A stretch of 64,000 bases of DNA, from assembly GCF_902652985.1 (NCBI RefSeq), contig NC_047019.1:11470001-11534000 (forward strand), given 5' to 3'. Shown in pieces: positions 16,163 to 48,826 of the stretch (positions are counted from its first letter, which is position 1; each line of letters opens with the position of its first letter). Below the pieces are notes generated by a model. The model was given only the letters and a program-made list of their open reading frames with translations, had not been told where the DNA came from and made no database searches. The DNA is from Pecten maximus (lineage: Eukaryota). Position numbers and translations under genes: made by a program.

Positions 16163-16849
16163 GAGGGCAGCGTTCCTCTTCACGTCCGATCGGGGAATCG
16201 AACTATGGCCTTTTTGTAGGACTTACCGAAATTTAGTTTTTGTTTGTTGGTTTGTTTAATATTACGTCTGATAATGTTTCCCAACCATTATTACGGAGAC
16301 AACGTATGATACATATATGAATCTCAGTTACCTTAGTAAAGTGTACCCCTGTCGATTCATATTGTTATTTTTATATATCTATTAAGAAAAACAAGTAGTA
16401 TAGATAATACGTGTACAAAAGTATTCTTGTAAAGTAACTCTATTAACGACATTTTAAATGTGAATTCTGAAATATGAAACCATTGGAACATGCACCAAAT
16501 GTTCAAACCAATTGTTATACGTGCCTCAGAAATAATAATAATAAAAAAAAAGAACAAAAATAATTAAGCCTGAGTCTTATATGAAGTCTTTTAAAACCCG
16601 TTAAGGAAAATAGTTATGTTTGTCAGATTGGTTATAGGAGAGTGTTGATTTCCCTATCGAGAACTATTTCGACGCAATTCTAACCTCAAACGAATCATGC
16701 AACGCCCTCAAAGGGTAGACTGAGGCAGAAACACAGGAATCACGAAGTTAAGGTAACGCTTATTGTAACAACTAGGAGTCTCCCAAAAGAAATAGAGCAT
16801 TTTCTTTTTAAATCGCGAAGGCGACAATTTTACCTTTGTAGTGTTTATC

Positions 16850-19800: not shown

Positions 19801-21898
19801 TAGGGTAAATATCACGATCAACAGTCGACATATGTCACAGATAACAGTACGTTATAGGGTAAATATCACGATTAACAGTCGACATATGTCACGATAACAG
19901 TACATTATAGGGTAAATATCACGATCAACAGTCGACATATGTCACGGATAACAGTACGTTATAGGGTAAATATCACGATCAACAGTCGACATATGTCACA
20001 GATAACAGAACGTTATAGGGTAAATATCACGATCAACAGTCGACATATGTCACAGATAACAGTACGTTATAGGGTAAATATCACGATCAGCAGTCGACAT
20101 ATGTCACGATAACAGTACGTTATAGGGTAAATATCACGATCAACAGTCGACATATGTCACAGATAACAGTACGTTTTAGGGTAAATATCACGATCAACAG
20201 TCGACATATGTCCTAGATAACAGTACGTTATAGGGTAAATATAACGATCAACAGTCGACATATGTCACGATAACAGTACGTTATAGGGTAAATATCACGA
20301 TCAACAGTCGACATATGTCACGATAACAGTACGTTATAGGGTAAATATCACGATCAACAGTCGACATATGTCACGGATAGCAGTACGTTATAGGGTAAAT
20401 ATCACTATCAACAGTCGACATATGTCACGATAACAGTACGTTATAGGGTAAATATCACGATCAACAGTCGACATATGTCGGGATAACAGTACGTTATAGG
20501 GTAAATATCACGATCAACAGTCGACATATGTCACGATAACAGTACGTTATAGGGTAAATATCACGATCAACAGTCGACATATGTCACGATAACAGTACGT
20601 TATAGGGTAAATATCACGATCAACAGTCGACATATGTCACAGATAACAGTACGTTATAGGGTAAATATCACGATCAACAGTCGACATATGTCACGGATAA
20701 CAGTACGTTATAGGGTAAATATCACTATCAACAGTCGACATATGTCACGATAACAGTACGTTATAGGGTAAATATCACGATCAACAGTCGACATATGTCG
20801 GGATAACAGTACGTTATAGGGTAAATATCACGATCACCAGTCGACATATGTCACGATAACAGTACGTTATAGGGTAAATATCACGATCAACAGTCGACAT
20901 ATGTCACGATAACAGTACGTTATAGGGTAAATATCACGATCAACAGTCGACATATGTCACGATAACAGTACGTTATAGGGTAAATATCACGATCAACAGT
21001 CGACATATGCCACGATAACAGTACGTTATAGGGTAAAATATCACGATCAACAGTCGACATATGTCACAGATAACAGTACGTTATAGGGTAAATATCACGA
21101 TCAACAGTCGACAAATGTCACAGATAACAGTACGTTACATGAGATGTATAGGGTAAATATCACGATCAACAGTCGACATATGTCACCGATAACAGTACGT
21201 TATAGGGTAAATATCACGATCAACAGTCGACATATGTCACGAATAACAGTACGTTATAAGGTAAATATCACAATCAACAGTCGACATATGTCACGATAAC
21301 AGTACGTTATAGGGTAAATATCACGATCAACAGTCGACATATGTCACAGATAACAGTACGTTATAGGGTAAATATCACGATCAACAGTCGACATATGTCA
21401 CAGATAACAGTACGTTATAGGGTAAATATCACGATCAACAGTCGACCTATGTCAGAGATAACAGTACGTTATAGGGTAAATATCACGATCAACAGTCGAT
21501 ATATGTCACGATAACAGTACGTTATAGGGTAAATATCACGATCAACAGTTGACATATGTCACGATAACAGTACGTTATAGGGTAAATATCACGATCAACG
21601 GTCGACATATGTCACAGATAACAGTACGTTATAGGGTAAATATCACGATCAACAGTCGACATATGTCGGGATAACAGTACGTTATAGGGTAAATATCACG
21701 ATCAACAGTCGACATATGTCACGGATAACAGTACGTTATAGGGTAAATATCACGATCAACAGTCGACATATGTCACGATAACAGTACGTTATAGGGTAAA
21801 TATCACGATCAACAGTTGACATATGTCACAGATAACAGTACGTTATAGGGTTAATATCACGATCAACAGTCGACATATGTCACGGATAACAGTACGTT
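16850..21898. repeat. 53/54-bp tandem array (GGGTAAATATCACGATCAACAGTCGACATATGTCACGGATAACAGTACGTTATA), about 94 copies
   Basis: Highly homogeneous head-to-tail units with no unique spacers. Confidence 0.98.
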
Positions 21899-21904
21899 AA
21901 AATT

Positions 21905-23545
21905 CTCCTTATCCTTCCATCCTCCTTATCCTCCCATCCTCCCATCCGCCCATCCTCCCATCCTCCTCATCCTCCCTTCCTCCCATCCTCCCATCCTCCT
22001 TATCCTCCCATCCTCCCATCCTCCCATCCTCCTCATCCTCCAATCCTCCAATACTCATTATCCTCCCATCCTCCTTACTCTCCTCATCCTCCCATCCCCC
22101 CATCCGCCCATCCTCCCATTCTCCTTATCCGCCCATCCTCCCATCCTCCCATCCTCTAATCCTCCTTATCCTCCTCATCCTCCCATCCTCCTCATCCTCC
22201 ATTCCTCCTTATCCTCCCATCCTCCTCATCCTCCCATCCTCCCATCCTCCATCCTCCTTATCCTCCCATCCTCCCACCCTCCCATTCTCCTTATCCTTCC
22301 ATCCTCCTTATCCTCCCAACCGCCCATCCTCCCATCCTCCTCATCCTCCCATCCTCCCATCCTCCTCATCCTCCCATCCTCCCATCCTCCCTTCCTCCCA
22401 TCCTCCCATCCTCCCATCGCCCATCCTCCTCATCCTCCCATCCTCCTCATCCTCCATTCCTCCTTATCCTCCCATCCTCCCATCCTCCCATCCTCCCATC
22501 CTCCCATCCTCCTCATCCTCCCATCCTCCCATCCTCCCATCCTCCTTATCCTCCCATCCTCCCACCCTCCCATTCTTCTTATCCTTCCATCCTCCTTATC
22601 CTCCCAACCGCCCATCCTCCCATCCTCCTCATCCTCCCATCCTCCCATCCTCCCTTCCTCCCATCCTCCCATCCTCCCATCGCCCATCCTCCTCATCCTC
22701 CCATCCTCCCATCCTCCCATCCTCCTCATCCTCCATTCCTCCTTATCCTCCCATCCTCCCATCCTCCCATCCTCCCATCCTCCCCATCCTCCTCATCCTC
22801 ACATCATCCCATCCTCCTCATCCTCCCATCCTCCCATCCGCCTCATCCTCCCATCCTCCCATCCTCCTAATCCTTCCATCCTCCCTTCCTCCCATCCTCC
22901 TCATCCTCCCATCCTCCCATCCTCCCATCCTCCTCATCCTCCCATCCTCCCATCCTCCCAACCTCCCGTCATCCCATCCTCCCATCCTCCTCATTCTCCC
23001 ATCCTCCCATCCTCCTCATCCTCCCATCCTCCCATCCTCCTATCCTCCCATCCTCCTCATCCTCCCATCCTCCCATCCTCCCATCCTCCTCATCCTCCCA
23101 TCCTCCTTATTCTCCCATCCTCCCATCCTCCTCATCCTCCCATCCTCCCCATCCTCCCGTCATCCCATCCTCCCATCCTCCTCATTCTCCCATCCTCCCA
23201 TCCTCCTCATCCTCCCATCCTCCCATCTTCCTCATCCTCCCATCCTCCCATCCTCCCATCCTCCTCATCCTCCCATCCTCCTTATCCTCCCATCCTCCCA
23301 TCCTCCTCATCCTCCATCCTCTAATACTCATGATCCTCCCATCCTCTTTATCCACCCATCCGCCCATCCTCCCATCCTCCCATCCTCCCATCCTCCTCAT
23401 CCTCCCATCCTCCCATCCTCCTCATCCTCCCATTCTCCTTATCCTCCCATCCTCCCATCCTCCCATCCTCCCATCCTCCCATCCTCCTCATCCTCCTTAT
23501 CCTCCCATCCTCCCATCCTCCCCGTCCTCCCATCCTCCCCATCCG
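21905..23545. repeat. Pyrimidine-rich simple satellite, (CCATCCTC)n with 9-bp variants
   Basis: About 1.6 kb of 8/9-bp units. It explains the MGGWEDGR ORFs. Confidence 0.97.
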
Positions 23546-30903: not shown

Positions 30904-30934
30904 CTTCATGTGCTTCCAATACAACTCAGCTAAA

Positions 30935-33900
30935 ATGAAGGTAAGATTTTCGCCATGTAGTTTAGGATATTCTTTAAATATCTATGTTTTTTTATCTTAA
31001 TGATTTATGGTAATTTCAGAAAGTTCAAGTAATATCATCGATACAATATTTGGAATTTCTTATTTATATTTACTGTAACTATTAAAAAACAACAAATCTA
31101 GACAAAGAAAAACATAGCCACTAGTGATTAACGCCTTTTCAATTAAGAATGCAATATCATGTTTGCTGAAAAACAAATCGATAGTTTAATTTGATTACCA
31201 CCTCGCATTAAAATACTCTTCATCAAGATTATCAAAAATGGTATTTCTAAACCCTAATAATTAACGCTTATTATGTACGATACTTCCTCACAAAAACATC
31301 GTCTGTCTTTATTGATTTAATCACATAATGTTATGACAAAAGTATGATTTCTTTTATCGTGAATATTACACAAGCAATTCGATTTTTATATGTTGAAAAT
31401 CGGTCAGTAACTACTATCGGTATGATGGTGATGAGCTTAACTCCTAAATTAGTAGTGAAAACAATTAACTCCTAAATTAGTAGGGAAAACAATTAACTCC
31501 TTAATAATTAGTGAAAACAATTAACTCCTAAATTACAGTAGTAAAAACAAAATGTAATGTAGTTTTTAGTTCTCTTGTTTATTAATTGTTGAGACTGAAA
31601 CATTCTAATCTAGATTAAAACAAGGCTAACAAGTTAGTGATGAATGTATCGTCAGCGTAACTTGATCATTCCCTAAATTAAATTTACCTGTATACTGTTT
31701 TCTATAATGCGCGGATCTGTTGTGTATCATTATCATTTTAGATCATCGTTACTCTAGTTTGCTTTGCTTTGCGATGAAGTAGTCATATCACTCGAAAGTG
31801 TCCGCAGGTACCTTGTAAATACTAGAACAGAGTTGTAATCAATGGATTGGTCTTATTTGTGCTCTGTTTAGCTTATTTGGTCAGATTTCTGTTGTGTTTT
31901 ACTTGACAGAATGTTGTCCAGTAATAGGCGCTGTATTTAAGTCATGTTTCTTGACGCATGTAACAAGAGGCCAAATACAACGAGGCTCTCGACTGGAAGA
32001 AAGTTTCTTACTCTTTATTCGCTTAGTATATTTTCTTCGTATTATTTGGATTTGCGATACATTTTCTCACTCATAACTCGAAATGGTCTTTGGCCTGGCC
32101 TTAATTTCTTGTCATATCATGACCACCTAGCCTCAAAGTATCTACTTATGCAAAATATCGTTGATAGCAACTAGAGGTCCTACAATGACACTCTCCGTTT
32201 GATCAAATAGTTGTGAGTTGTATATTGATATTATAACAAAATTAATATGATGAATCTCCGCCACTGATTAAATGATTAAAATCAATTTGCTAGAGACCAA
32301 CGAGGCCTTTTGCATCTTGTTAAATTAACTGATTCAATTTGAGTGTTGTTTCTCTGAAAACTTGATAAATATTTGTCACGTGATTATAGGTCCTATAACT
32401 TAAAGAAATGCAAAGGTTTCCATTTTTTAATTATAAGAACCTATAGAAAGCAAAAACAACTGGGAAATAAATAAAGAAATGATTTAATAACTAATTAAAT
32501 AAACACATAGATAAATAAAGAAATTAACTTTTTCTTGCTTCTTCCTCAGGTAGTGCTGGTCATTTCCGCCCTGCTGGTGGTGGTTCTTGGACAAGAGGAA
32601 ATCTTAAACGCCCCAGGAATCATAGAGCCTGACATACAACAATGCGAGAAAGAACTATATAGATACCAAACGTGGGATGATGGGATTATGTTCCCCTTGG
32701 GCGTAGTTGCTCACATTCATAAATAGTAAGTATATTGTATATTAAAGCATGCTATTCATGATCGACAGAAAAAAGAATAGTATGTTTTATATATTACCAA
32801 ATCTAGATACAATTTATACTAACACCACCCTCCTAACAACACCCTCCTAAAAATGAAGATCATCTTTTTATCTTTTGAATCTGAAGTGATAGAATGATTA
32901 ATTTCATCTGGAAAAAAAATCTATCGCGGCCGCCTCATTTATTTGTAGGTAGTTTTGGTCTCATATATGCGATCATTTTGGAAGCTATTTTTATGGTTTC
33001 CAATTTTTGTATCGTTGATGCCATTTTTATTCTCAGAAGCAATTAGAAAAATTGTTTTTATTTTGTTATTCTTATTTTCAAAATGAGACATATTTCCACG
33101 TAATGTGGAAAACACAAAACTAAACATAATTCTTTATAATTGGTCAATATGATATGATCCTGTTATGTATAAAGCTTCACGTATATGATGAAACTCGATG
33201 TTGTGCATTTCACTCTTGGTTGTCTAAAATGTCCATGACCATAACAAACATTTTCAAATAGTAGCGTCATTTGATTAACGATTTAATGTATTTAAAAGCA
33301 TCTGTTGTTTTTATAAGTATATTGAGTATAATGTTTGACACCTGATTACAGCTACAAAAAAGAAATCGACAGATCATTCACCATGGATAAGCATCAGCTT
33401 CTCCTTCAAAAGATGGACAACTATTCCAACTACCAAAATTTCGTTCCGGACTTTAGAGGAGAAGGGTAAGTTCGACTCCACTGAAAGTTAAATTAGTTAT
33501 CTTTTGTATACATGTTTGTTTGAAATTAAAATGAAAAAAAGTCAAAATTGAGTTTAATTCCTACGTGATGACGTATAACTCCAATGACACCTTGCAGTTC
33601 ATTGTCGGTATGATATTATTATTTTGCTATATGAATCTAGGTTGACTACGGGTTAGGTCCCATTTTTAAATTTGTCAAGTCTTTTTTTTTTTTTTTTTTT
33701 TTAAGTTTGAATTTTTCAAGTCTTGACATTGAACAGGATTGATGTAGTATCTACAGAGTTACCTTACACATAGTATCTAATTCTTGGTTGTTTTCGTTAA
33801 TTCTATAACATCAAACGCGGTAGTATTGCTCCTATCAATCAATGTATTCGATACTTAGCTGTGTTACTTCTCTATATATCAAATCTTTCAGGGATTTATG

Positions 33901-34817
33901 TGATCGATGATTATTTGAATACAACATGAACAAGTTAAATGAAATTTTACTGCAGCAGAAGACTGCAGCCAAGCAACATGCAAAGTAATGAAATGAAAAT
34001 AATTACAGTTGACCGTTGATTAAAAATCATTAAAATAGAATTAAAAACAAAACTTAATTCTTTTAAACATATCCACCATATTTGTGTGACTGTTGTTTTT
34101 TGTAATAATATCGCCTTCTGATTATTTCGATAAAAAATCGAGTATCGTTTGAAAAAAAATATGATTTGCATTACAGAGGTTTCGAAGACTGCAAAGACTT
34201 GTGTCCATCAATAAGCGTCAATGTGGGTGCTGTGGCGGTTAATAACGTCACTTACGGCATAAATGGCGAACCTGAATTTGGAATCTGTCTCGTTGTCTAT
34301 CCCGAGTTCCAAAACTTCCGATACCAATCATGCGAGTAAGTATCTATTCATTCATGATTTATTTTCGGTAGTAACGTTTGACTTAAGACTGTTTTGTTAT
34401 GCTATTGAAATCGACAACATTTTAACATTTTAAAAGGTTATAAAGAAAATAAACAGTACCACAATCCTTTTATGGCACCGGTAGATCATCAGATGAATAC
34501 AAATGCAATTTCATTTTCCTTTGAATTTCAGGACTCAGCTTGCTTTAAACGTTCCTTGGACAAATGACTTTCAAATGAAATATGCTTGCGTCCCTGATGG
34601 ATTCATCAAAAGGAAACTGATTGTCTATTGTCCCACTGCCCCGATGGGACAGTGTCGGGAAGTAGAGGTCTCTGTCCCTATGGCGTGCAGTCCAAAGTTA
34701 GCTAAATGTACATTCACTGATGCATATGTTAAAAGGAGGAACAATGAAATAGCACTGAAGGCGAGAGCAAACGCGAAAAAAGGAAACAAGTTCTTCTCAA
34801 AGTTTTTGAGAATATAG
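30935..34817 (+). CDS. Gene A: secreted Spaetzle-like cystine-knot pre-pro-protein with a degenerate knot, 246 aa, 5 exons
   Basis: Exons 30935-30940, 32550-32725, 33352-33465, 34177-34335, 34532-34817; all GT-AG, phases 0,2,2,2; 741 nt open to TAG. Signal peptide MKVVLVISALLVVVLG. C-domain LCPS..CLVV..Q..YQSC..YAC..GF..VYCP..VPMACS resembles the Spaetzle pattern. AATAAA at 35152. Confidence 0.88.
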
Positions 34818-35859
34818 AAACAGATGTATGATTATCACAAGATTGAAGAACTGGTTTTAAAACTACCAACAATATCCTTGATGCTATTTAAATGTGTATA
34901 TAGTATTGCCGTATGAGTGTTAATAAGTTAATAAGTACAAATTAGCATTGTATATACCATCAGATATATCATCTGTTACTTTTTTGCATATTCAATATAA
35001 TCTGTTTATGTAATATTATCAACTCTGGTGTTTATTTACTGTGTGTTGACATTTCTGTAATTATGTGTTTACTTGTGATCGATATTTGTGATTTAAATGT
35101 GACTTGTGTTTTTACCTACCCAACGACGTGATATCCGACAGTGGAAAGTGCAATAAAATGTTTCCTGATATACCAGCTTTTGGGTTGTGTTATTTAGATA
35201 TTTATTCCGGAGCCTTGAACCATTTGCTAAACTTCAAGTATTGGAGGTAACAGAGTGGGAAATGAATTTCTAATTCGAGTAACGTACGATCCACGAGTGA
35301 TCAGAATTCGACATAATGGGGTTTACTGTATAAATATGTACATTGAGGCTTTATTTTGTGTAATACGATAAACTCTTTATCGAAAAAGGTATTGAAGAAA
35401 ATTTACTTAAAGAATAATAATTATTGATCTTTGTAGTCTTTTTTTTATGAACACAACAAGAATTATGAAATCTACTATGTACTATATGAAAACATAGAGA
35501 AATGTCGGGTCTGGAAACATACTCGCTTTTCACCTTGGAAATACATAAAGTCCTCTCCCTTTTTCATCTCGACTAACAGGAAATAAAAATCAGTTTATGT
35601 ACGTCTTATTGCATTGTGTGGACACAATAATGTTTACAGATTTAGGAATTTTCAAGCAACATCATTAGCGGTCTACATAATATTTAATATCACGCAAGTT
35701 ATTAAACTCAAACAATTCCTCAAATTTTCTACAAAATTTGTTAGTTTACTAAACACCCTTAGCCACCCTTCATCAATCAAAATATCCGTACTGTCTCTCC
35801 CAAGTTTATTATCTCGTACAATACTAAAGCGACATTGAGACAATTCCAGATTTCCTATG

Positions 35860-36430
35860 CGACTCTACCCGAAACAATATCCTAGGCGACCTTGAGAGCC
35901 TATTTCCTGAAATGATATCCTAATCTAATTCCCCCGAAACAATATCCAAAACGACTTAACCTGAAATGTATCTTAAGCGACCTTGAGAGCCTATTACCTG
36001 GAACAATATCCTAAGCGATCTTTAAAGCCTTCTACCTGAAACCATATGCAACCTTACCTAAAAGAATAACCCGAGCCGCCTTCAGAACCTTTTACCTGAA
36101 ACAATATCATAAGTGACTCTACCAGAAATAATATACTAAACGACTTTACCAGAAACAATATCCTTAGCGACTTTGATAACCTATTACCTGAATTTATATC
36201 CGAAGCGACCTTACCTGAAACGATATCCCAAGCGACCTTGAGAGTCTATTACCTGAAAGAATATACTAAGCGAGCTTCCCTTAAAAAATGTCCTAAGCGA
36301 CTTTGAGAACTGTTGCCTGAAACGATATCCTAAGCGGCATTGAGTCCCTATTACCTGAAACAATATCCTAAGCGGCATTGAGCCCCTATTACCTGAAACA
36401 ATATCCTGAACGGCCTTGAGAACCTATAAC
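35860..36430. repeat. Degenerate tandem repeat of about 26/38 bp (CCTGAAACAATATCCTAAGCGACCTTGAGAGCCTATTA)
   Basis: Recurring core with a variable spacer. Confidence 0.85.
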
Positions 36431-36919
36431 ATTCGACCTAAACAATTTTTTCAAGAAACCCGAATTGAATGAGACCAGTAAATGTAAATTCGAAACAGAT
36501 ACAGTATATGCCCATTCATGAATATAAAACTGCAGCATACAGCTATTACCTGAACGTCTTTCTTTGAATAATCAGTGAGGCTTTAGGATCAAATACTGAA
36601 ATAAAAAATGGAAGCGTGAACAATCGAAAAGGCCTGAATAAATTCTGAAATATAGCAGGCTTGTTGCATTATCCCTATTATGAAAACATGTTTATATCAT
36701 TAATTAGTCAGAAATATATATTTTCCTCATACTAAAACAGCTTTAAAAAAAAGAAGGGTTTGACAAAGGTTAAATATAAGTGAATATCCCAGTGAGTGTT
36801 GTAGGTGATTGGAACAGTCTGTCAAAAGCAGTGTTCAACTTATCAGTTATCTCATCCGTAAGAGATCTGAAAAATATCTGCCCGATTTGTTTCTAGGATT
36901 ACTCATAGATCAACGCATA

Positions 36920-38635
36920 TATAAACACAGCTCCATTGTAGCTAGAGACAGTGACGTCTAGATACACAAGGCTCCACTGTAGCTGGAGACAGTGACGTCT
37001 AGATACACAAGGATCCACTGTAGCTGGAGACAGTGACGTCGAGATAAACAAGGCTTCACTGTAGCTGGAGACAGTGACGTCTAGATAAACAAGGCTGGAC
37101 TGTAGCTAGAGACAGTGACGTCTAGATACACAAGGATCCACTGTAGCTGGACAGAGTGACGTCTAGATAAACAAGGCTTCATTGTAGCTGGAGACAGTGA
37201 CGTCTAGATACACAAGGATCCACTGTAGCTGACAGTGACGTCTAGATAAACAAGGCTTCACTGTAGCTGGAGACAGTGACGTCGAGATAAACAAGACTCG
37301 ACTGTAGCTGGAGACAGTGACGTCTAGATAAACAAGGCTTCACTGTAGCTGGAGACAGTGACGTCTAGATAAACAAGGCTTCACTGTAGCTGGAGATAGT
37401 GACGTCTAGATAAATAAGGCTCCACGGTAGGTGACAGTGACGTCTAGATAAACAAGGCTTCACTGTAGGTGACAGTGACGTCTAGATAAACAAGGCTTCA
37501 CTGCAGCTGGAGATAGTGACGTCTAGATAAACAAGGCTTCACTGCAGCTGGCGATAGTGACGTCTAGATAAATAAGGCTCCACTGTAGCTGGAGACATTG
37601 ACGTCTAGATAAACAAGACTCGACTGTAGCTGGAGACAGTGACGTCTAGATTCTCAAGGATCCACTGTAGCTGACAGTGACGTCTAGATAAACAAGGCTT
37701 CAGTGTAGCTGGACAGAGTGACGTCTAGATAAACAAGGCTTCACTACAGCTGGAGTTAGTGACGTCTTGATAAATAAGGCTCCACTGTAGCTGGAGACAG
37801 TGACGTCTAGATAAACAAGACTGTACTGTAGCTGGAGACAGTGACGTCTAGATACACAAGGATCCACTCTAGCTGACAGTGACGTCTAGATAAACAAGGC
37901 TTCACTGTAGCTGGAGACAGTGACGTCTAGATAAACAAGGCTTCACTGTAGCTGGAGACAGTGACGTCTAGATACACAAGGATCCACTGTAGCTGACAGT
38001 GACGTCTAGATAAACAAGGCTTCCCTGCAGCTGGAGATAGTGACGTCTAGATAAATAAGGAAATTTAGTTTTGCCTACAGCGCAAAATGGAAGCCCACAG
38101 AAAAGGTAAGATAGCGGAAAAACTTAATTTACAACATATGTCCAAACAAGATTAATTCTGTCTTTGGGATAGAGATATTTAATTTTAAATAGGTTTCAGA
38201 AAAAAAATTGTGTAGAGAATTGTGCCATTTTGGGTCAAATATCATAACATTTTGCAATTTTTGAGAATTTTTTAAGCTGTTACCATGGTATTCACAGCTC
38301 TAAAAATCACAGAAAATATCAGTTTACTTATCCTTCAGAGCTCTATTAAAATTACAAATGTTGTACAGATTTCAAATATATATACTTTATTAGAGGTTAT
38401 ATGTAAGGTTAACTGGCAATGTTTACATATCTAAAACATGTGCCATATTTTTCAGAATTTGGCATTTTTACTGTACACTGCTACCTAGATACACAAGGAT
38501 CCACTGTAGCTGACAGTGACGTCTAGATAAACAAGGCTTCATTGTAGCTAGAGACAGTGACGTCTAGATAAACAACGCTCTGCTGTAGGTGGGGACAGTG
38601 ACGTCCACATACACAAGGCTCCACTGTTGCTAGAG
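36920..38635. repeat. 41-bp tandem array (CTAGATAAACAAGGCTTCACTGTAGCTGGAGACAGTGACGT), about 32 copies, interrupted at about 38061-38484
   Basis: Head-to-tail units with 38-bp variants. The array resumes after the insert. Confidence 0.95.
38061..38484. mobile_element. Insertion of about 420 bp (probable DNA-transposon fragment) inside the 41-bp array
   Basis: Unrelated AT-rich sequence with array units on both sides. No clear TIR pair. Confidence 0.5.
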
Positions 38636-38637
38636 AG

Positions 38638-38737
38638 TAGTTTTTTCCCTGGGTACTCCGGCTAATCTCACACTCCAAAACCAGGCACGTCCTTAAATGA
38701 CCCTGGTTATTGATAGGACGTTAAACAAAATAAACCT
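38638..38737 (+). mobile_element. 5'-truncated copy of the V-SINE
   Basis: Matches about 16050-16145: GGGTACTCCGG..CTCCAAAACCAGGCACGTCCTTAAATGACCCTGGTTATTGATAGGACGTTAAACAAAA. Confidence 0.85.
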
Positions 38738-40050
38738 TAATTCAGATGAAATTGCCTTGAAGCGTGAACTTTAAAAGTCGTTTGATAAAATCACATATGA
38801 AATGAAAACTCGTTACACTTATCTATGAATATTTTAAGATATATTGTGCTAAATTCTTGTTACAAATATCATATTGTTATTATTTTGTTAAACAAGAGAA
38901 TACCTCATTTATATTCAGTCATTAATACAATCAATTTACGAGATCATTAAAGTGGATTTCATTCAAAAACCAGTATAGTTTCATTCATCAACAGTGGACT
39001 TAATTAATGAGATAATTAAAGTTGAATAGTGGATTTCATTACTAAATAATCATCTTTTCTTTGTTTTCATGGTAAATACTCAAATGTGATTGGTCGAAAA
39101 ATTCTTTTCATTCTTCTATGAAAGAACTCCCGAGAATGGCGCGAAAATGTGACGTCACAATACGAAAATTGACGTTGCGTATTGATTTGAGTAGAATTGT
39201 ACATAAAACATTTTTTAAAAACAAATTTTGTTTGCACACTTGACGCGGATTCATACAGTTTCAAACAAAATTTGTTTCATACCCCGATGAAACTAAAAAA
39301 AAAATGACATCAAGGTCATTAGCATCACTGAGGAGTCCTAGAAGGACTAAGCATCTGTATGATGCAGGCTAATTTAAGTGTGTCACTACTCAACCTGGCG
39401 CTGCTAATTCTGTACAATTCTTTGACCACTGGACAGACAGGATGTTAGGGTATTGCTTACATTGGTAATGTTTTCATATACTCAAATTTATATCAGCGTA
39501 TATTTCGTATAATTTTAGCGCCATACATATTCTCTATTTTCTACTTGATTGAATTGGTTTATATAAACTTCCACGTTATATATAACTTTTGTACACTGTA
39601 TGATGGACAGTCCTCGACATCAATTATCCTAGCTTCTTTCTTTACTGTCGACTTTGATGTATAATGCCAATTTACCATCTATAATCCTCATGCTCTAACC
39701 ACAGTTTGAAATATTGTTATATTCAACACGATATATCAAGGAGGCGTCGGGGAAAATCCTCCTTTTTAACTTTTTAACTGACAGATTGGTTATGTCTATC
39801 ATAATACTCTATCACATAGTTTTTCTACCAAATCAAACAGTACAGTCCCCTAAGTTAGACTTTGGAATGAGTTCAGTAACTATTTAGTGCTGTACATGGA
39901 AATGCGTTAATATCTTTTATGTTCTTTATACAGCCTTAATTTGAAACATTGTAAAGAAAGTTAAAAGATGTAAGTATCGGTATTAATCTTTAATAGTCCT
40001 TCATGTGCGAAATACGTGCAAAAGCTTATGTCCATATCTAAACCCGTTGT

Positions 40051-41597
40051 TTGGCTCAATATGTTTTATATTCAGTTTGTTTGACTGCTGAATTGTTGAG
40101 TTTAGCCTGTTTGGCTGATGAATTGTTGTGTACAGCCTGTTTGACTGTTGAATTGTTGTATTCAGCCTGTTTGACTACTGAATTGTTGTGTTCAGTCTGT
40201 TTGACTGTTGAATTGTTGTGTTCAGTCTATTTGATTGCTGAATTGTTGTGTTCAGTTTGTTTGACTGTTGAATTGTTGTGTTTAGCCTGTTCGACTGATG
40301 AATTGTTGTGTACAGCCTGTTTGGCTGTTGAATTGTTGTATTCAGCCTGTTTGACTGCTGAATTGTTGTGTTCAGTCTGTTTGGCTGTTAAATTGTTGTG
40401 TTTAGCCTGTTTGATTGCTGAATTGTTGTGTTCAGTCTGTTTGACTGTTGAATTGTTGTGTTCAGTCTGTTTGACTGTTGAATTGTTGTGTTCAGTCCGC
40501 TTGACTGTTGAATTGTCGTGTTCAGTCTGTTTGACTGTTGAATTGTTGTGTTCAGTCTGTTTGACTGTTGAATTGTTGTGTTCAGTCCGCTTGACTGTTG
40601 AATTGTCGTGTTCAGTTTGTTCTGTTGAATTGTTGTGTTCAGTTTGTTCTGTTGAATTGTTGTGTTCAGTCTATTTGATTGCTGAATTGTTGTGTTCAGT
40701 TTGTTTGACTGTTGAATTGTTGTGTTCAGTCTGTTTGACTGCTGAATTGTTGTGTTCAGTCCGCTTGACTATTGAATTGTCGTGTTCAGTTTGTTCTGTT
40801 GAATTGTTGTGTTCAGTTTGTTCTGTTGAATTGTTGTGTTCAGTCTATTTGATTGCTGAATTGTTGTGTTCAGTTTGTTTGACTGTTGAAGTGTTGTGTT
40901 CAGTCTGTTTGACTGCTGAATTGTTGTGTTCAGTCTGTTTGACTGTTGAATTTTTGTGTTTAGCCTGTTTGACTGCTGAATTGTTGTGTTCAGTCTGTTT
41001 GGCTGTTACATTGTTGTGTTTAGCCTGTTTGATTGCTGAATTGTTGTGTTCAGTCTGTTTGACTGTTGAATTGTTGTGTTCAGTCTGTTTGACTGCTGAA
41101 TTGTTGTGTTTAGCCTGCTTGACTGTTGAATTGTTGTGTTCAGTCTATTTGATTGCTGAATTGTTGTGTTCAGTCTATTTGATTGCTGAATTGTTGTGTT
41201 CAGTCTGTTTGACTGTTGAATTGTTGTGTTCAGTTTGTTTGACTGTTGAATTGTTGTGTTCAGTTTGTTCTGTTGAATTGTTGTGTTCAGTCTATTTGAC
41301 TGCTGAATTGTTGTGTTCAGTCTGTTTGACTACTGAATTGTTGTGGTCAGCCTGTTTTACTGCAGAATTGTTGTGTTCAGTCTGTTTGGCTGTTGAATTG
41401 TTGTGTTTAGTTTGTTTGACTGCTGAATTTTTGTGTTTAGCCTGATTGACTGCTGAATTGTTGTGTTCAGTCTGTTTGGCTGGTGAATTGTTGTGTTTAG
41501 CCTGTTTGACTGTTGAATTGTTGTGTTCAGTTTGCGTGGCTGCTGATCTGTTGTGTTCAGTTGTTTGACTTCTGAACTGTTGTGTTCAGTCTGTTTG
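40051..41597. repeat. 30-bp tandem array (TTGACTGTTGAATTGTTGTGTTCAGTCTGT), about 52 copies with 24-bp variants
   Basis: Direct periodicity. It explains the 464-aa LTVELLCSVC ORF. Confidence 0.97.
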
Positions 41598-42659
41598 TCC
41601 TATCCGATATGTAACACAATATAAAGAATACTGGCATGGAAATAAAACCTTTATTATAACGCCATAAGCCAAAAACCAAAACACCGTTTCATTGAAATAG
41701 CATGACCGTGGTAGGCGTATCTCCTGATTCTTTATGCAGACACTGGAATGGGCTTGTGGTGCTACTTTGTGTATTGCAATCGATACCTAGCGTTACAGGG
41801 AACATTAAGTGCAATTAAAATGACGTTGGTGTACAACGCGGCCTGCTGACATATATCATATTCTCCCTCTAAAAAAAAACCCCCCACTTAACTAACAAGC
41901 CAAGCATAAGGCAGTGTCGAGGAAAACTTTTAGAAGAAGAAAGGTATTTAGACAGAACATATCCAAAAACATCATGAAATATGGGCAACAGGTGCAAATT
42001 TAAGTCTTAATTGATGTTACATAATTATTTGAAAATGAATTGTTTGTACAGAGATTGCATTGGACTATCAAATGTGCAGACAGCGATCAAATTTAGAGCA
42101 GATCAAAATTCCAATTGATATCATTACTGAACCTGTAACTTCAGGTTTATGAGTATATGTCAGTAAATAACTGTGGCCCAAAACCCCTGTATCCAAAAAC
42201 AGAATGTTTTCTATTCATGTGATCAAATAACGATTCATAGAATAGCAACCATCCCTACATTGGGTCTGATAGTTCAGAGGACTATAGATTTTGATATTCA
42301 GATCAATTTTTCATAAAAATGAATTTTTTTTTATATAATTCTTAAATTTATCTTTATTTGTTTTAATTGTGTAAACACAAGGTAAGTGATGGAGATTAAG
42401 GTAATTTAAACAAAACAAATACTAACATCAATTATTTTGACTGACAAGTAGTGCTGAAGAAGTAAGCGATGATGGAGTGATGGAGATTCTGCGAGGTGTA
42501 GATGAGTTGGTTAGTTGATGTATCAGGAGAATGACATTTTCTTTATATCTGTTTACGGTAAGACTAATGTATGCATACAGCGACCACACAGGTAAAAATG
42601 TTTAAATTTGCGCTTCAGTATAACTATGTAAACCAAGCACGCTCCGATTCGCGATATTT

Positions 42660-42823
42660 AAGCAATGAACATTGGTGTTAATGTTGTTATAGTCGATATG
42701 GCAGCAAGATGTATGGTGGGCAAATGGCATGGGAACCCGTTAGGGTGTCCATGCTACATTTGCCAACCATACATCTTGCTGCCATATCGATTATAACAAC
42801 ATTAAAACCACTGTTCAATACTT
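42660..42823. repeat. Imperfect palindrome of about 165 bp (foldback element)
   Basis: TTAATGTTGTTATAGTCGATATGGCAGCAAGATGTATGG pairs with CCATACATCTTGCTGCCATATCGATTATAACAACATTAA. Confidence 0.85.
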
Positions 42824-44194
42824 ATATTTACATTGTCTTACCATTTTCGTCAACTTTGAAAAAAAACTAAACCAACACAAAAAAATCCCGCCTTTTTAAT
42901 GTCACATGACCCACTGGATGTTATAGCCTGAGGCACTGGGTGTTATAGGCGTATGATGGCAACTGCCTCTTAGCATTGTATCAATGGGGAAATGCAGAGC
43001 AAATGTAAATATATTCCTATGAACCGAAAGGACAATGAATATACACGTGATATTGACGTAAATAAATTATACAAAACGTGTTTGACTCTCGCTTGGACGA
43101 AAAGTTGATGAAAACGTAATGTAAACAATTCATTTCACAGTAATTGCAAAATAAGAAACATTTATGTATACAAATTTATAATACCACTGGTAATTACGCG
43201 GATAGAAGTGAGCGAGCGATCTTGCTTTGGGAAGGAAAGTGCGATGAATTTTTTACCATTGTTTCATTATTTAGTTTTTGTTTGTCTACCCCCAACTGTC
43301 CTCAATCTCTAAGCACTGTGAACTCCAAAATGTCAAGAATCCTTCGAGGATTATCGATCAAATCGGAGTCAGTGGCACCAAACTGAAACCGACAATTCAT
43401 ATTAACAACGCAGTTGACAACCAATAGTTTACATCTCACTGGACACTTTAGAGGTCAGTATCTAAAGTTGGTTTCTCCAATTTCCAAACTAGGTAGACGA
43501 AAACATGTTTTCTAAGACTTCATTACTAATTCATCAAAAGTATTCAACATTTGTCGGCATTGTGACGTAATATTCACAGATGTGTCATGTATCACTAAGT
43601 GCTACTTAACTGCCTTTTAGCCAAGAAGAATCTAACAGAGGAAATGATTTACGCTAATTCTTAGAATAATAAAACCCATGTACGTTAGCTGTTGTGCACG
43701 GACTGTATTCAAAAGAATACAGGAGAGTGCGAATGAGTGTTTCATGTCGCATCAAAGGGCCACGAATTCAACATTCCAGAGACTCTTGGAAAGGATTGTT
43801 TTCTGTTTGTAACTATATTTCTGCCTACGGTCAGGCGTTTGAATGTGAATATAATCTCGGTTTCGAAAAATTGAGAAGCAGGCCTACTAGAAAACAGAAA
43901 ATATCACAACATTAAATTTCGGGTAACTTTTTATATCCTATAACCTATTAAAACTCGATTTTTAAGGTTTTAGAATGTAAAGGAATGTTAGAAATAAAAT
44001 GAAAGAAATTGATTCTTTTAAGAAAAACCAGAAAGATGCAAACAACTTTTTATCAATCAAAATTCTTTAATTTTTATGTACATATACAAATATACAAATT
44101 ATATAGAGGATGTTGTATGGTTCCCGTTGGCTATAACACATGTTTAACGAGTATGACAGAATAGACTTTTTGTAACGTTACTGCACGCCAAATT

Positions 44195-44860
44195 AACCGC
44201 GCCATTTTGAAAGGACTGATCAACGCAATTTAAGCGTTTCTTGCTGTTATCAGAGAATCTGTACATGAAAAGCTAATGTAAAAGTGAGGATTTGTCAAAA
44301 ATTAGTCAGAATATTTCACAAATACAGCAAAATAGCCCATTCATACATAATCGCCTCGATTGGAAACATCGGTAAGTTTCAATGTATGAGTGTTCGCTCT
44401 GATTGGTCAAAAACTATTTTTTTTTTAATTTTTACTGCTCATCGCTGCAGTGAAAACGTAAGTTTTATCAATTAGATATTTTTTTATTTCACTAGCAAAA
44501 AGAAAATAAAGCTATATATCTAATAGAGTTATGAAAGTTTAAAGTATTGGGAATATATTGTGAAGGTACCGATTCTAACATATGGAATATTTACATCTCT
44601 CCCTTTTTCATCTACGTAAACTCTGAATGCGAATAAATTAGCGTATATGCAGTGTTGAAAGACACAGCAGATTAATAAGCGCGGGAATTGGGAACACATT
44701 TGTGACGTCGTCTATCTGTGACGTTACCGGAACGTCAATTGGACGGCGCCATTTTGAAAGGACTGACCAACGCAATTTTAGCGTTTTTTCCTGTTACCCG
44801 ATGATCTCTGCACAGAAAGCTAACGTCACGTGATTATTCTGACAAAAACTAAACTGAATA
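44195..44860 (+). repeat. Two dispersed direct copies (about 44195-44320 and 44745-44860) of a CGCCATTTTGAAAGGACTGA..CAACGCAATTT repeat
   Basis: Shared diverged sequence of about 110 bp. Confidence 0.65.
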
Positions 44861-45160
44861 TTGCGGAAATGGGAGCATATTTAACTTCTCCACGAGGTGA
44901 GCTAACAACAAATGGCTGAAGCGTACCGTTTCTAGAGAACTTTTGATAATATTAAAAACGTAATAGGTCTTAATTAAACAAACATATTGAGATGTTTCAT
45001 TCAATTTTGTTCATAATAATTGATATCTTTACGTAGATTCACTGGAACTATATTATCTTAGCAACCACGGCTGTCGTAGTTACCAACGCCGCAAAACATC
45101 CAGCATTTTGTTTTCTTCGAACTGTATTTAAACGATTTGTTTGATGTAGATACATGTGTA

Positions 45161-45320
45161 TAAGGATTGTATCTCATTTTGACTGCGTATACGGTAGTAT
45201 GCCCGAAGTTGGCAACGTACATACCCTACGGCTAACGCTAACGCGCCAACCATAGGGTATGTTCGTTGCCAACTGCGGACATACAACCGTATACGCAGTC
45301 AAAATGAGGTACAACCCTAA
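45161..45320. repeat. Imperfect palindrome of about 160 bp (foldback element)
   Basis: CTCATTTTGACTGCGTATACGGT..GTTGGCAACG..ACATACCCTA pairs with TAGGGTATGT..CGTTGCCAAC..ACCGTATACGCAGTCAAAATGAG. Confidence 0.85.
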
Positions 45321-46208
45321 AGTGTCGATCACTCTTAATCAAGACTGATCTTCGAAATTATCGGAAAAACGATAGAATGTTTTAAGATATTGATTTTCTA
45401 GAATTGTTCTCCTTATGAAGTCAATAACTGTAATCTCGGGCGAAGTTTTGCATTATCTGATGTGTAACGTAACCGTTGTCGAATTGCGACACACCCACAC
45501 TATCGCTATTGTTTAAAACCAATCCGAATAAATTTATGCTATTTTCATTTCACTTAAACGAATTCTCGTCATTACATTAAGCTTACGAACACGACAATTC
45601 ACAAATTTGGCATAAATTTGCAATACGGATGCAGAGGACGTTTCTCCTTCTAATGCACTTTGTCCTATTTCCACGTAAGTTTTAAATGTTCCTTTTGTCC
45701 ACCAACATGTGTTGATATTTTCTCCGTTCAATGATGTATGTGTTGTCATTTGTATAACTCCACATAACCTTTCCATTTGCAATCTTTATCTAATATATAA
45801 AACATGATACAATATAATGCATAATTGGCAAGTTTATTAAGGATGAAAAGTACAAAATAGCATTGCATGTAATACCAACAACATCATGTATTTTAAAAAG
45901 TAAAAACAAAGGAAATATTACAAAATACAAGTTTTTTTTCAGACAATGGTGTTATTTACATTTGTACAATTAAACAACAAACAAAACAATTTACATTATA
46001 CATACAAAAACATTAACATATTGCACCAGCCCAACGACGGTGGTTTAATGACACAAAATGAAACTATTGGCGAAAAAATAATTAATAATGTCAGGAATTT
46101 GCATCATTAAAGTCCATATATTTGGTGGTATCGGGGAGTATCACATAGAGCATGTGGATTTACTTTCGGAGTGTTCATAAGTCTCGATAGATAGGCCATA
46201 TATGACCT

Positions 46209-48826
46209 TTACATGTTGCATCCCAGAGGTTTGGCTTTAATAGGAGTTACAGGCAATTCAAAGCGAGTACCAAGACCTGCCAGTAAATCAGCAAAAAGAA
46301 TATCTGCGCTTTCGCAATGGAAGCATTTCCTGCAGCTACAAGTGGTTGGTACCCTTCTGGTTGTAAAAATGTATTCGTCAGCATCGGGACAATAAACCAA
46401 CACGCGCTTCTCCACAAATCCGGATTGAATGCACCTAAACTCTTCACGTGCTCCGTAGTCCATTTGACATTTGTCATGTGTTTTTTCGACACTGGAAAAA
46501 GGAAGTATGCAACATGGTTATTCTATTATATACTTGAGGAAATGTTTGAAAACGGCCGCCCTGAAACACCTTTATCTTTTCGGATTATATTAGGATTTTT
46601 TTTTTTCATATTTTTGTTTAAACTAGAATACCAGTATTTATATATTACTTTATTATGATTTCAAAGCCAATGATAAAAGAAATTACGAAATCAGAATAAA
46701 TTGCGTGAGCTTTTCATCAACGTGCTCATTTAAAAGGAAACCTAATAAATAAAGGACCTAATGCATGTTGATATTTATTCAACGTGACAATAAATGATAA
46801 AGTTTTGTCTACTTTACAATCAAACAATAAAATAAGTATAAAATATCTCAAATTATAAAACAATTATCAATAGTTAAAAACGTAATACTTACGGGTTCAT
46901 ACACCGGGCGTAGTACAACTCTTGTCGCATCCAGTCGGTATCAATAACTATACATTCAAATTGAGAAGATCGGCCTCCAAAGCTGAGATTTTCGAACACA
47001 TTCCAAATAGGGATTTTTTCCATTCTACACAGCTCCTCAAACTTTATACGTCGATGTCTACAAGAAAAGCAATAGAGCGTTTATGTGAAGGATTATGAAG
47101 ATTGGTTCAAAGGACCTATTGACGTGTGATAAAAAGAGACACTTTCGCGAAACCCAGGAACATTGTAATACCAGACATTAGATTAGATATCCTCATGCGA
47201 TGGAAAAAAAGAGTTTGTGACTCCCACTCGGTAAAAGTTTTCATTAACAATATTGATTAAAAACAAAATTTTGAGACGTTTTAGCAAAAACGATCTTGAT
47301 AATTGTATCGAGTAACATAAATAAAATAAGTGATAATGAAATTCGGAAATAGGTACAATGTCCTAACGCGAGATGATAATGAAAAGGAGTAATATTTCTA
47401 AAAGGAGAAAAAAAAAAGGTTTGTTGTGCCCTGAATTCGAAAAAAACAATGGAATGAAAATAATGCCATACCATAGTTAAAAAAATATGTTTTTTTTTTA
47501 TTAAACATTATGTAAGGTTTTGAAATCGTCAACTACGAAGAAGTAAAACTGAACACAAATAACGAACCTTGTTGCCACTTTGGCAATCACCGGCTTAGGC
47601 TTAGGAATGTCCACGACACAGTCCTTCGTGTCATCAATGTAGGTAAATCCATCATATCGTCTTCTGTTGCTGTTCATACCAGTGATAAGTTCCTTGTTGA
47701 TTTCCAAACTGATAAAAAAGCAATGAATATAACATTATCAATTAAGTTGGAGACGACACATAAATAATCTTTATTAAGTGAATAAATAATCAGTTTATTA
47801 TATATTAAATTATCGTATATTTGTTTTTAAATACTTATGTTGTTTGGTAAAAACCTCTGCAGCTTATATATCAAACCTTACGCGCTTTTTTCTTTATCAG
47901 TTTGATTCGTTAATGCATATATGACTATTACGCAATATTTGAATACATGAAGTTTGTATCTGTAGCCGATATGTGACAGGAGACTAGCATTTATTTCCAA
48001 TTAAGAATCTATCATTATTTTATGTCATTATTGACAAAGCATCCACAAAATTACAAGGAAACTTTGCTCTTGATTATCCCGATGATCTAATATTATGAGG
48101 AGATTAATCATTAAAAACACTTCTGAATTTCCTATTCATTGTTGAAATAGAATACGTATCAAATTTCCTTTATAACGTTTTCAGTGATATTTATCAGAAT
48201 ACCACTGCGTTTAAATCTTGTGGACTTTGATGGGAAAAACAAAAGTTTTAACTTATATCATTACTTCTATGGTTTTCAGACTCACACACCTTATTACACC
48301 AATTTAAGTTAGTTAATTAGATAAACTTTTAAAAATCTGTTCATCCAAACATAAATGCTTACGGATTAAATTTGTTGTTTTCGCAAATCCAGTCGCTGAC
48401 AAAGGGTTTGTAGTTGTCACAATTTTTAACCAGTTCCAACCCCGCTGCAGGGGAAAGACTGGCTGCTAGGCCGAGAAGTACGAAGATGGCGAGCTGTAAA
48501 ATAAAACAAAGTTCGCTTTTTATCTTGAAATAAACATCCAACAGCATTTTTAAAAATAAAAAAAAAGATATTATATTTGAACTGGATTATAATGATATTT
48601 TGATTCCGATAATTTTTCATTTTGTATATTACTGATTAAGTATAAACTGCTCATTTTCATTTGAGCGTGAAATTGCCTATCAGCATCGAATAAAACCAGC
48701 AACAAAAACAATTCATTTTGAAAATTAAAGAAATACAAAACAAACGTTACTTAAATGACATATACCTAGACTTTACGCTTTGATATAAACTCTATGGTAA
48801 ATATTTGCTAACAGTGTACCTACCAT
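46209..48826 (-). CDS. Gene B: secreted Spaetzle/neurotrophin-like cystine-knot pre-pro-protein, 240 aa, 5 exons
   Basis: Exons 48826-48824 (ATG only), 48493-48363, 47708-47568, 47057-46893, 46491-46209; all GT-AG, phases 0,2,2,2; 723 nt open to TAA. Signal peptide MLAIFVLLGLAASLSPAAG, furin site RHRR, six knot Cys in LCR..ARC..DKC..RCIQ..VPTTCSC. AATAAA on the minus strand at 45838-33. Confidence 0.9.

Follow-up and report, generated by a model that had tools for sequence, protein, structure and literature searches.

Two convergent genes, here called A and B, were analysed in a window of 64,000 nucleotides from the scallop Pecten maximus (RefSeq assembly GCF_902652985.1, contig NC_047019.1, positions 11,470,001 to 11,534,000 of the forward strand; coordinates below are those of the window). 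Predicted structures and profile comparisons support the view that both genes encode signal-peptide proteins in which an N-terminal region is followed by a C-terminal cystine-knot growth-factor domain. As a whole reading, we think it reasonably probable that these are secreted pre-pro-proteins of a small bivalve family, with a knot that has a ring of the NGF/Spaetzle/coagulogen type, which are cleaved in the linker and act as an extracellular ligand or modulator. In our reading they make up a distinct bivalve family within the cystine-knot superfamily, one that resembles Spaetzle, NGF and coagulogen and is not firmly placed in Spaetzle.

The gene models were obtained by reading the frames and applying the GT-AG rule. 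Each gene has five coding exons separated by four GT..AG introns, whose phases are 0, 2, 2 and 2 in both. The first coding exon is 6 nucleotides (nt) long in gene A and 3 nt long in gene B. In the following list, Roman numerals denote the six knot cysteines (Cys) in order, and residue numbers for gene B are those of its product.

Gene A, 30935-34817, plus strand: five coding exons, product of 246 amino acids (aa)
Gene A exon 1, 30935-30940, plus strand: ATG AAG; joint 30940/32550 in RNA runs X10, X4 and X1
Gene A exon 2, 32550-32725, plus strand: signal peptide and start of the helical N-terminal region; joints 30940/32550 and 32725/33352
Gene A exon 3, 33352-33465, plus strand: remainder of the N-terminal region and flexible linker; placed by spliced-contig joints
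Gene A exon 4, 34177-34335, plus strand: first half of the knot, with an extra Cys, Cys I, the finger-1 Cys and Cys II; placed by joints 33465/34177 and 34335/34532 and by alignment with the B family
Gene A exon 5, 34532-34817, plus strand: Cys IV, finger-2 Cys, A-specific Cys and Cys V, without Cys III and Cys VI; basic C-terminal helix; stop
Gene B, 46209-48826, minus strand: five coding exons, product of 240 aa
Gene B exon 1, 48824-48826, minus strand: ATG only, donor GTAGGT; the RefSeq model P0001 begins M/LAIF
Gene B exon 2, 48363-48493, minus strand: signal peptide and N-terminal region with Cys26 and Cys38
Gene B exon 3, 47568-47708, minus strand: N-terminal region with Cys75
Gene B exon 4, 46893-47057, minus strand: [ST]-R-x-R motif, then Cys I, finger-1 Cys127 and Cys II
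Gene B exon 5, 46209-46491, minus strand: Cys III, Cys IV, finger-2 Cys181, Cys V-x-Cys VI, C-x-x-C, tail and stop

The gene B product is identical, residue for residue, to P0001 (XP_033739891.1, "uncharacterized protein LOC117327149"). Exon 5 corresponds to P0001 residues 148-240 with a 100% match, and the acceptor of exon 4 was placed at 47057, where the spliced product equals P0001. An alternative start, the in-frame ATG at 48547, lies within intron 1. The gene A product equals P0033 (LOC117327148, 255 aa, "uncharacterized") minus its first nine residues, the RefSeq start being an upstream ATG at 30908. The 246-aa form with its ATG at 30935 was judged the better start because the 5' ends of the transcript contigs lie at about 30909-30924, directly abutting adaptor sequence, and because the orthologues in Ylistrum and Mizuhopecten begin MKVVLV and MKLLLV, respectively.

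These models agree with an initial annotation made from the sequence, which had described two five-exon genes on opposite strands with a first coding exon of 3-6 nt and phases 0,2,2,2; all of this was recovered, and the products are RefSeq proteins. It had also described products of 240 and 246 aa with a signal peptide and N-terminal region ahead of the C-terminal domain, as was found in both genes, and the motifs it listed for that domain (LC, N[VL][TS][YF]G, C[LI]V, Q...Y..C, C...GF, VYCP.A and VP..CS) all occur in both proteins. Its remark that the pair was hidden from the open reading frame (ORF) track is apt in that the exons are short, but both genes were already annotated in RefSeq. A literature search by locus name found no mention of LOC117327148, LOC117327149 or their orthologues, and one by the accessions of the RNA runs was equally negative; the genes are annotated yet unnamed and the family is uncharacterised so far.

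Gene A is transcribed. In Pecten RNA from four studies (runs X10, X4, X3 and X1) the read depth favoured exons over the rest of the gene by one to two orders of magnitude in every run, and the four introns whose splicing had been predicted were all seen as GT..AG joints in spliced contigs, at 30940/32550, 32725/33352, 33465/34177 and 34335/34532. The spliced contigs run on to 35000, so the 3' untranslated region extends past that point. For gene B the support is good though indirect. Its orthologue in Argopecten (P0032) is present as an uninterrupted 723-nt ORF on Logan contigs of about 1 kb from two runs, and when the P0032 contig was mapped to the Argopecten genome it was divided by four GT-AG introns, at coding-sequence positions 15, 146, 272 and 437 with phases 0, 2, 2 and 2; the introns of gene B in Pecten fall at coding-sequence positions 3, 134, 275 and 440. 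That both genes are real and spliced was therefore borne out directly for gene A, from Pecten RNA, and for gene B by way of transcripts from the Argopecten orthologue.

Two irregular joints were seen in the gene A contigs. In run X1, 32517 is followed directly by 30943 on a 934-nt contig of depth 36. Both positions are in intron 1, the former some 30 nt ahead of the acceptor and the latter among the first bases, a pattern compatible with reading across the branch of a lariat or circular RNA formed from this intron. In run X3, exon 2 is joined to 33355 with CTT between, where the reference has CTA, which reads as an allelic difference of one base at 33354 (Tyr to Phe in the second codon of exon 3), not as the use of another splice site.

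AlphaFold2 models of the two proteins were built on a 15-sequence alignment. Model B has a mean predicted local distance difference test score (pLDDT) of 67, rising to 76-89 over residues 101-200, with strands at 103-129, 140-145, 154-157, 160-181 and 186-202 and long hairpins at 111-129 and 160-202. Model A has a mean pLDDT of 71 (73-87 over residues 121-240) and strands equivalent to those of B, including 177-193 and 202-218, preceded by helices at 40-57, 65-78 and 82-100 (pLDDT up to 90) and a disordered linker at 100-113, and followed by a basic C-terminal helix at 224-253. Both proteins have a hydrophobic N-terminus. The domain is modelled as two long antiparallel beta-hairpin fingers, with six cysteines in register with those of the canonical domain.

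Foldseek gave no match to the PDB at E <=0.001 with either model. Its lists of weak matches consisted almost purely of cystine-knot cytokines, with NGF chains at the head of the one for A (E 2e-3, probability 0.99). VIA, a structural search independent of Foldseek, gave for A a best match to coagulogen (Z 7.2, 144 of 175 residues aligned, root-mean-square deviation 4.6), followed by NGF (4.9), noggin (4.7) and IL-17A (4.6), with SOST (4.0), VWF-CTCK (3.7) and Spaetzle (3.3) lower; every one of the 32 chains with Z >=2 was a cystine-knot growth factor. For B the order was coagulogen (5.0), IL-17A (4.8), noggin (4.5), SOST (4.3), gremlin (4.2), NGF (3.8) and Spaetzle (2.4), and the top 15 matches were all cystine-knot proteins. 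The real fold signal is the single-superfamily make-up of these lists, entire for A and at the top for B, more than any individual Z. Both models, then, are predicted to adopt the cystine-knot growth-factor fold on which the initial annotation had staked its case. A shell or byssus matrix protein was judged unlikely because every structural and profile signal indicates cystine-knot signalling proteins. IL-17 and noggin are structural ties only (Z 4.5-4.8) and were set aside as having no sequence support.

The place of coagulogen at the head of both lists raises another reading, in which A and B would be non-signalling proteins: monomeric substrates of a protease cascade which, once cleaved, polymerise or coat surfaces, for instance in wound plugging or in the extracellular matrix. 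Coagulogen is a pro-protein cut after Arg, and gene A has a conserved Arg-Gly in its disordered linker. The horseshoe-crab protein (1aoc) was, moreover, the only match to cover the helical N-terminal part as well as the knot (model A residues 45-218 against chain residues 1-175; model B residues 27-203), and a Z of that size can nevertheless arise without kinship. There was no Pfam Coagulin (PF02035) hit at E <=10, no sequence similarity to coagulogen could be detected, the Cys count differs and the phyla are distinct. Clotting by a coagulogen-type protein is not known in bivalves. We regard this reading as very improbable. The knot of horseshoe-crab coagulogen is itself described as NGF-like (Bergner 1996, as cited in PMC2586362).

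The spacing of the cysteines places the ring more closely. In B, Cys I to VI are separated by 42, 11, 12, 31 and 2 residues. The scallop's canonical NGF/Spaetzle gene, which carries its whole knot on one exon (L003, G000:C9:23336152-23336433, minus strand), has 37, 9, 11, 31 and 2. The motif C-x-G-x-C is absent from every family member examined, and the family ring is instead C-x10-C with C-x-C; the distance from Cys II to Cys III is 11 residues in scallops and oysters and 17 in unionids. From the nearness of the B spacing to that of L003, the ring is taken to be wide and NGF-like, lacking C-x-G-x-C. To the six knot cysteines the family adds an invariant pair, Cys127 in finger 1 and Cys181 in finger 2, which probably bond to each other from finger to finger, and a C-x-x-C tail.

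Gene A departs from this plan. Its domain has nine cysteines where B has ten, and Cys155 (III) and Cys200 (VI), in B numbering, are missing together in all four A orthologues. That joint loss is the best indirect evidence for taking Cys155-Cys200 as the III-VI pair. Two other cysteines are invariant and specific to A, one lying four residues before Cys I and the other in the finger-2 turn. As the III-VI ring disulfide appears to have been replaced by other cysteines, the knot of the A clade has probably lost the classical threading. Decay of the gene is argued against by the A orthologues themselves, which are 53-74% identical with every Cys invariant (n=4).

The initial annotation had assigned the pair to a Spaetzle/neurotrophin-like family, and part of that assignment stands. 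Pfam Spaetzle (PF16077) was the best family in 7 of the 15 members (E 4.9e-5 to 1.7e-2), with a domain-wide match that runs from finger 1 to the C-x-C (positions 18-95 of 96 in the profile) and spans Cys II to VI. The nearest ESM-Atlas clusters for both proteins were Spaetzle/NGF (scores 0.91, 183-188 shared features), and for A the Spaetzle cluster was also the nearest by Atlas model, with a TM score of 0.46. UniProt already applies the label "Spaetzle domain-containing protein" to the Mizuhopecten and oyster relatives. The likeness extends to the predicted secreted pre-pro architecture, the C-terminal knot of about 105 residues, the wide ring and the near-equal spacing of Cys I to VI.

These similarities, with the conserved Arg residues upstream of the knot, are what a stronger proposal would draw on, namely that A and B are true members of Spaetzle, cleaved by a clip-domain protease, whose knot dimers activate scallop Toll-like receptors (TLRs). 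Variants with unusual cysteines do exist within the family: in Drosophila, two additional cysteines are found in both Spz3 and Spz4, and Spz6 has two conserved ones fewer (PMC2586362). The scallop, however, already possesses a canonical gene in L003, which scored 28 bits for PF00243 and, as the positive control for PF16077, 37.7-38 bits. Bivalves and gastropods both have orthologues of L003 (P0039-P0057), and several of these carry the names "Spaetzle domain-containing" or "Nerve growth factor-related". Against that standard the A/B family differs in its additional Cys127/Cys181 pair and C-x-x-C tail, in the loss of Cys III and VI from the A clade, and in a knot split by a phase-2 intron where the canonical scallop domain lies on one exon.

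A number of results weigh against the proposal of true membership, and they also count against the reading given at the outset. The Pfam Spaetzle cut-off of 27 bits was not reached by any member, the best score being 24.3 bits (P0031) and that of P0001 19.3, and the A clade had no Pfam hit at all. When the B family (alignment A3, 11 sequences) was compared by hhalign with the canonical molluscan family built from L003 (A6; 12 proteins, all with PF00243 and PF16077), the result was not significant (probability 1%, E 0.05), though Cys II-VI were in register. The A6 profile matched solved structures of NT-3, BDNF and NGF (E 1.6e-7) and of Aedes Spaetzle1C (3.7e-4), whereas the profiles of the present family matched sclerostin alone (E 1.8e-4 with A2, 4.6e-3 with A3) and no Spaetzle or neurotrophin chain in the PDB. 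The Spaetzle crystal structure (3e07) was a weak structural match (Z 2.4 for B and 3.3 for A), the Z-scores are modest overall, and both models rest on just 15 sequences. By itself, the A clade gave nothing in hhalign against the canonical NGF/Spaetzle exon, the canonical family or the CTCK exon described below, and single exons gave no usable Pfam hit, the only one being Sclerostin at E 0.042 for B exon 5.

The Spaetzle/neurotrophin assignment thus keeps its best Pfam family, its ESM-Atlas neighbours and its ring spacing, and loses the cut-off and any significant hhalign link to the canonical family. True membership, with TLR activation by the knot dimers, seems to us possible but rather unlikely. 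Among molluscs, the Spaetzle of the bivalve Paphia undulata was the first homologue to be described (Yu et al. 2015, as cited in PMC8637286 and PMC7773633). It, too, comes from a bivalve and is a secreted protein with a cystine knot, for which a role as Toll-pathway ligand has been discussed; it differs, going by its published description, in having the canonical seven Cys (PMC8637286), which makes it of the L003 type.

The sclerostin match points in a different direction. Pfam DAN and Sclerostin were found below threshold in four to five members, and comparison of the family by hhalign with a scallop CTCK exon (L009) gave a probability of 87.5% and E 3.6e-6. L009 (G000:C15:19939027-19939143, minus strand) is a terminal exon of the classical CTCK type (CSGYC ... 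CCQP ... CGCSAC; PF00007, 38.8 bits). The canonical NGF/Spaetzle profile scored E 0.77 on L009, so the match of the family is not generic cysteine noise. It is limited to 38-45 residues of finger 2, with the shared motif C-[VI]-P..F..R.V.L.CP....VP..C.C..C. From Cys IV onward the spacing is 14, 17, 2 and 3 in the family and 14, 16, 2 and 3 in L009, the finger-2 pattern C-x13-C-x16-C-x-C of DAN/CTCK proteins is present, and the same eight cysteines occur in the same order if the finger-to-finger pair Cys127-Cys181 is counted.

On these grounds A and B might be divergent knots of the DAN/sclerostin/CTCK type, which would be secreted to antagonise or modulate BMP/Wnt-type ligands and would not be receptor-activating cytokines. 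The resemblance to sclerostin, DAN and CTCK domains (PF05463, PF03045, PF00007) in the motif C-[VI]-P...V.L.CP...VP..C.C..C, the spacing and the inter-finger Cys pair is, however, absent in finger 1. The eight-membered ring with C-x-G-x-C was not found; the spacer in the ring measures 10 residues, and between Cys III and IV there is a short loop like that of NGF. Pfam Cys_knot (PF00007) was not matched, and for A the structural search ranked NGF and coagulogen above SOST, gremlin and CTCK. Unlike DAN proteins, the family also has a long stretch of about 95 residues, with conserved Cys, at the N-terminus. A DAN-type identity is accordingly an improbable one in our estimation. For the distinct family that we prefer, the DAN/CTCK-like finger 2 may reflect either common descent or convergence.

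Considered as a pair, A and B show little similarity: BLASTP gave E 2e-6 across 21 residues of exon 5, and none was found between the two exons 4. With orthologue sets the relation becomes clear. The B family aligned with the A clade (A4, four sequences) by hhalign at a probability of 95.4% (E 1.7e-8, 97 columns), spanning the whole Cys-rich domain, and a B-only profile recovered gene A exon 5 from the whole genome at E 2.7e-5. By these comparisons A and B are distant paralogues. The genome-wide searches covered the Pecten assembly of 918,306,378 bases in 3,983 contigs. Single-exon searches recovered the query genes alone, and therefore the Pecten genome has no close paralogues of them; at the sensitivity used no further Pecten paralogue was found, the profile searches adding only the CTCK exon L009 at E 0.31. 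An exhaustive phmmer search with gene B exon 5 gave 11 hits, from which P0008 (a zinc-finger repeat protein) and P0009 (a TPR protein) were discarded as false positives.

The convergent arrangement of a B-type and an A-type gene was also found in Ylistrum balloti (JAUZWB010000184.1), at a distance of about 14 kb, and in Mizuhopecten yessoensis (NEDP02000414.1), at about 27 kb, while in Argopecten genes of both types lie on one chromosome record (CM084264.1). The arrangement is old, being conserved in three scallop genera with both genes on one chromosome in a fourth. Oysters, pearl oysters (Pinctada) and unionid mussels also have relatives of the B type. Genes of the A type were found in scallops only, within the searches made. 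As far as the searches reach, members are confined to bivalves, which is in keeping with the lineage-specific family proposed in the initial annotation. A tree of the family (15 members) gives the A clade a very long branch, of 4.06 changes per site; as it is unrooted, it is silent on whether A arose within scallops.

Under the reading favoured here, each protein would begin with a signal peptide and an N-terminal region of some 80-95 residues that is mostly helical, followed by a linker with conserved Arg and a knot of about 105 residues with two hairpin fingers. The knot would combine the wide ring of the NGF/Spaetzle/coagulogen class with an additional finger-to-finger Cys pair and a DAN/CTCK-like C-x-C-x-x-C end. 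After secretion the linker would be cut by a trypsin-like or convertase protease, and the freed knot domain would act as an extracellular ligand or as a ligand-binding modulator or trap; a TLR is one conceivable partner. Candidate cleavage sites can be proposed from the sequence of both proteins. In gene A the Arg-Gly encoded at 33455-33460 (R105 and G106 in P0033 numbering) is invariant in the four A orthologues and falls within segments of pLDDT<50 (100-102 and 104-113), and it is a candidate activation site. In gene B a [ST]-R-x-R motif, encoded at 47048-47057 together with the end of exon 3 and reading RHRR in Pecten, is conserved in four scallops and is a candidate linker cleavage site for the scallop proteins; it is not conserved in the B proteins of oysters or unionids.

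A more ambitious version of the same scheme would have a bivalve-wide class of cystine-knot cytokines, with an NGF/Spaetzle ring and a DAN/CTCK-clamped finger, serve as protease-activated ligands for part of the expanded TLR repertoire, the scallop A type being a divergent ligand, a decoy or a partner of B. This we offer as a long shot. Bivalves have the largest known TLR repertoires (PMC10279657), and Paphia provides the one mollusc Spaetzle homologue described, whose link to TLR signalling was not shown (PMC7773633). A conserved and expressed cystine-knot family with predicted secretion and pro-protein features may supply concrete candidates for the endogenous ligands. Were the DAN-like interpretation true, the same proteins would instead be candidates for extracellular antagonists. 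The mosaic knot, and the joint disappearance of both cysteines of one knot disulfide from gene A, are also of interest for the diversification of cystine-knot families. In practical terms the value is limited in that the genes are annotated, their relatives carry the automatic label "Spaetzle domain-containing", and the analysis is silent on function.

An intergenic spacer of 11.4 kb separates the 3' ends of genes A and B, and includes two tandem arrays without strand:

Minisatellite with a 41-bp unit, 36921-38060: within the A-B spacer
Minisatellite with a 30-bp unit, 40071-41597: within the A-B spacer; yields a spurious 464-aa ORF at 40051-41445

Elsewhere in the window, a 151-aa ORF at 53897-54352 on the minus strand is rich in Ser, Arg and acidic residues and matched nothing in Pfam; it possibly represents an exon of a further gene lying downstream of the promoter side of gene B. 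A run of 138 N at 12429-12566 is an assembly gap or a mask. Large minisatellite arrays were found at 3-3531, 16845-23544, 36921-38060, 40071-41597 and 54710-56448, with units of 21/42/47 bp, 54 bp (94 copies), 8 bp (ATCCTCCC, about 197 copies), 41 bp, 30 bp and 15 bp. These arrays account for the strong blocks of GC skew and for several long spurious ORFs in the window.

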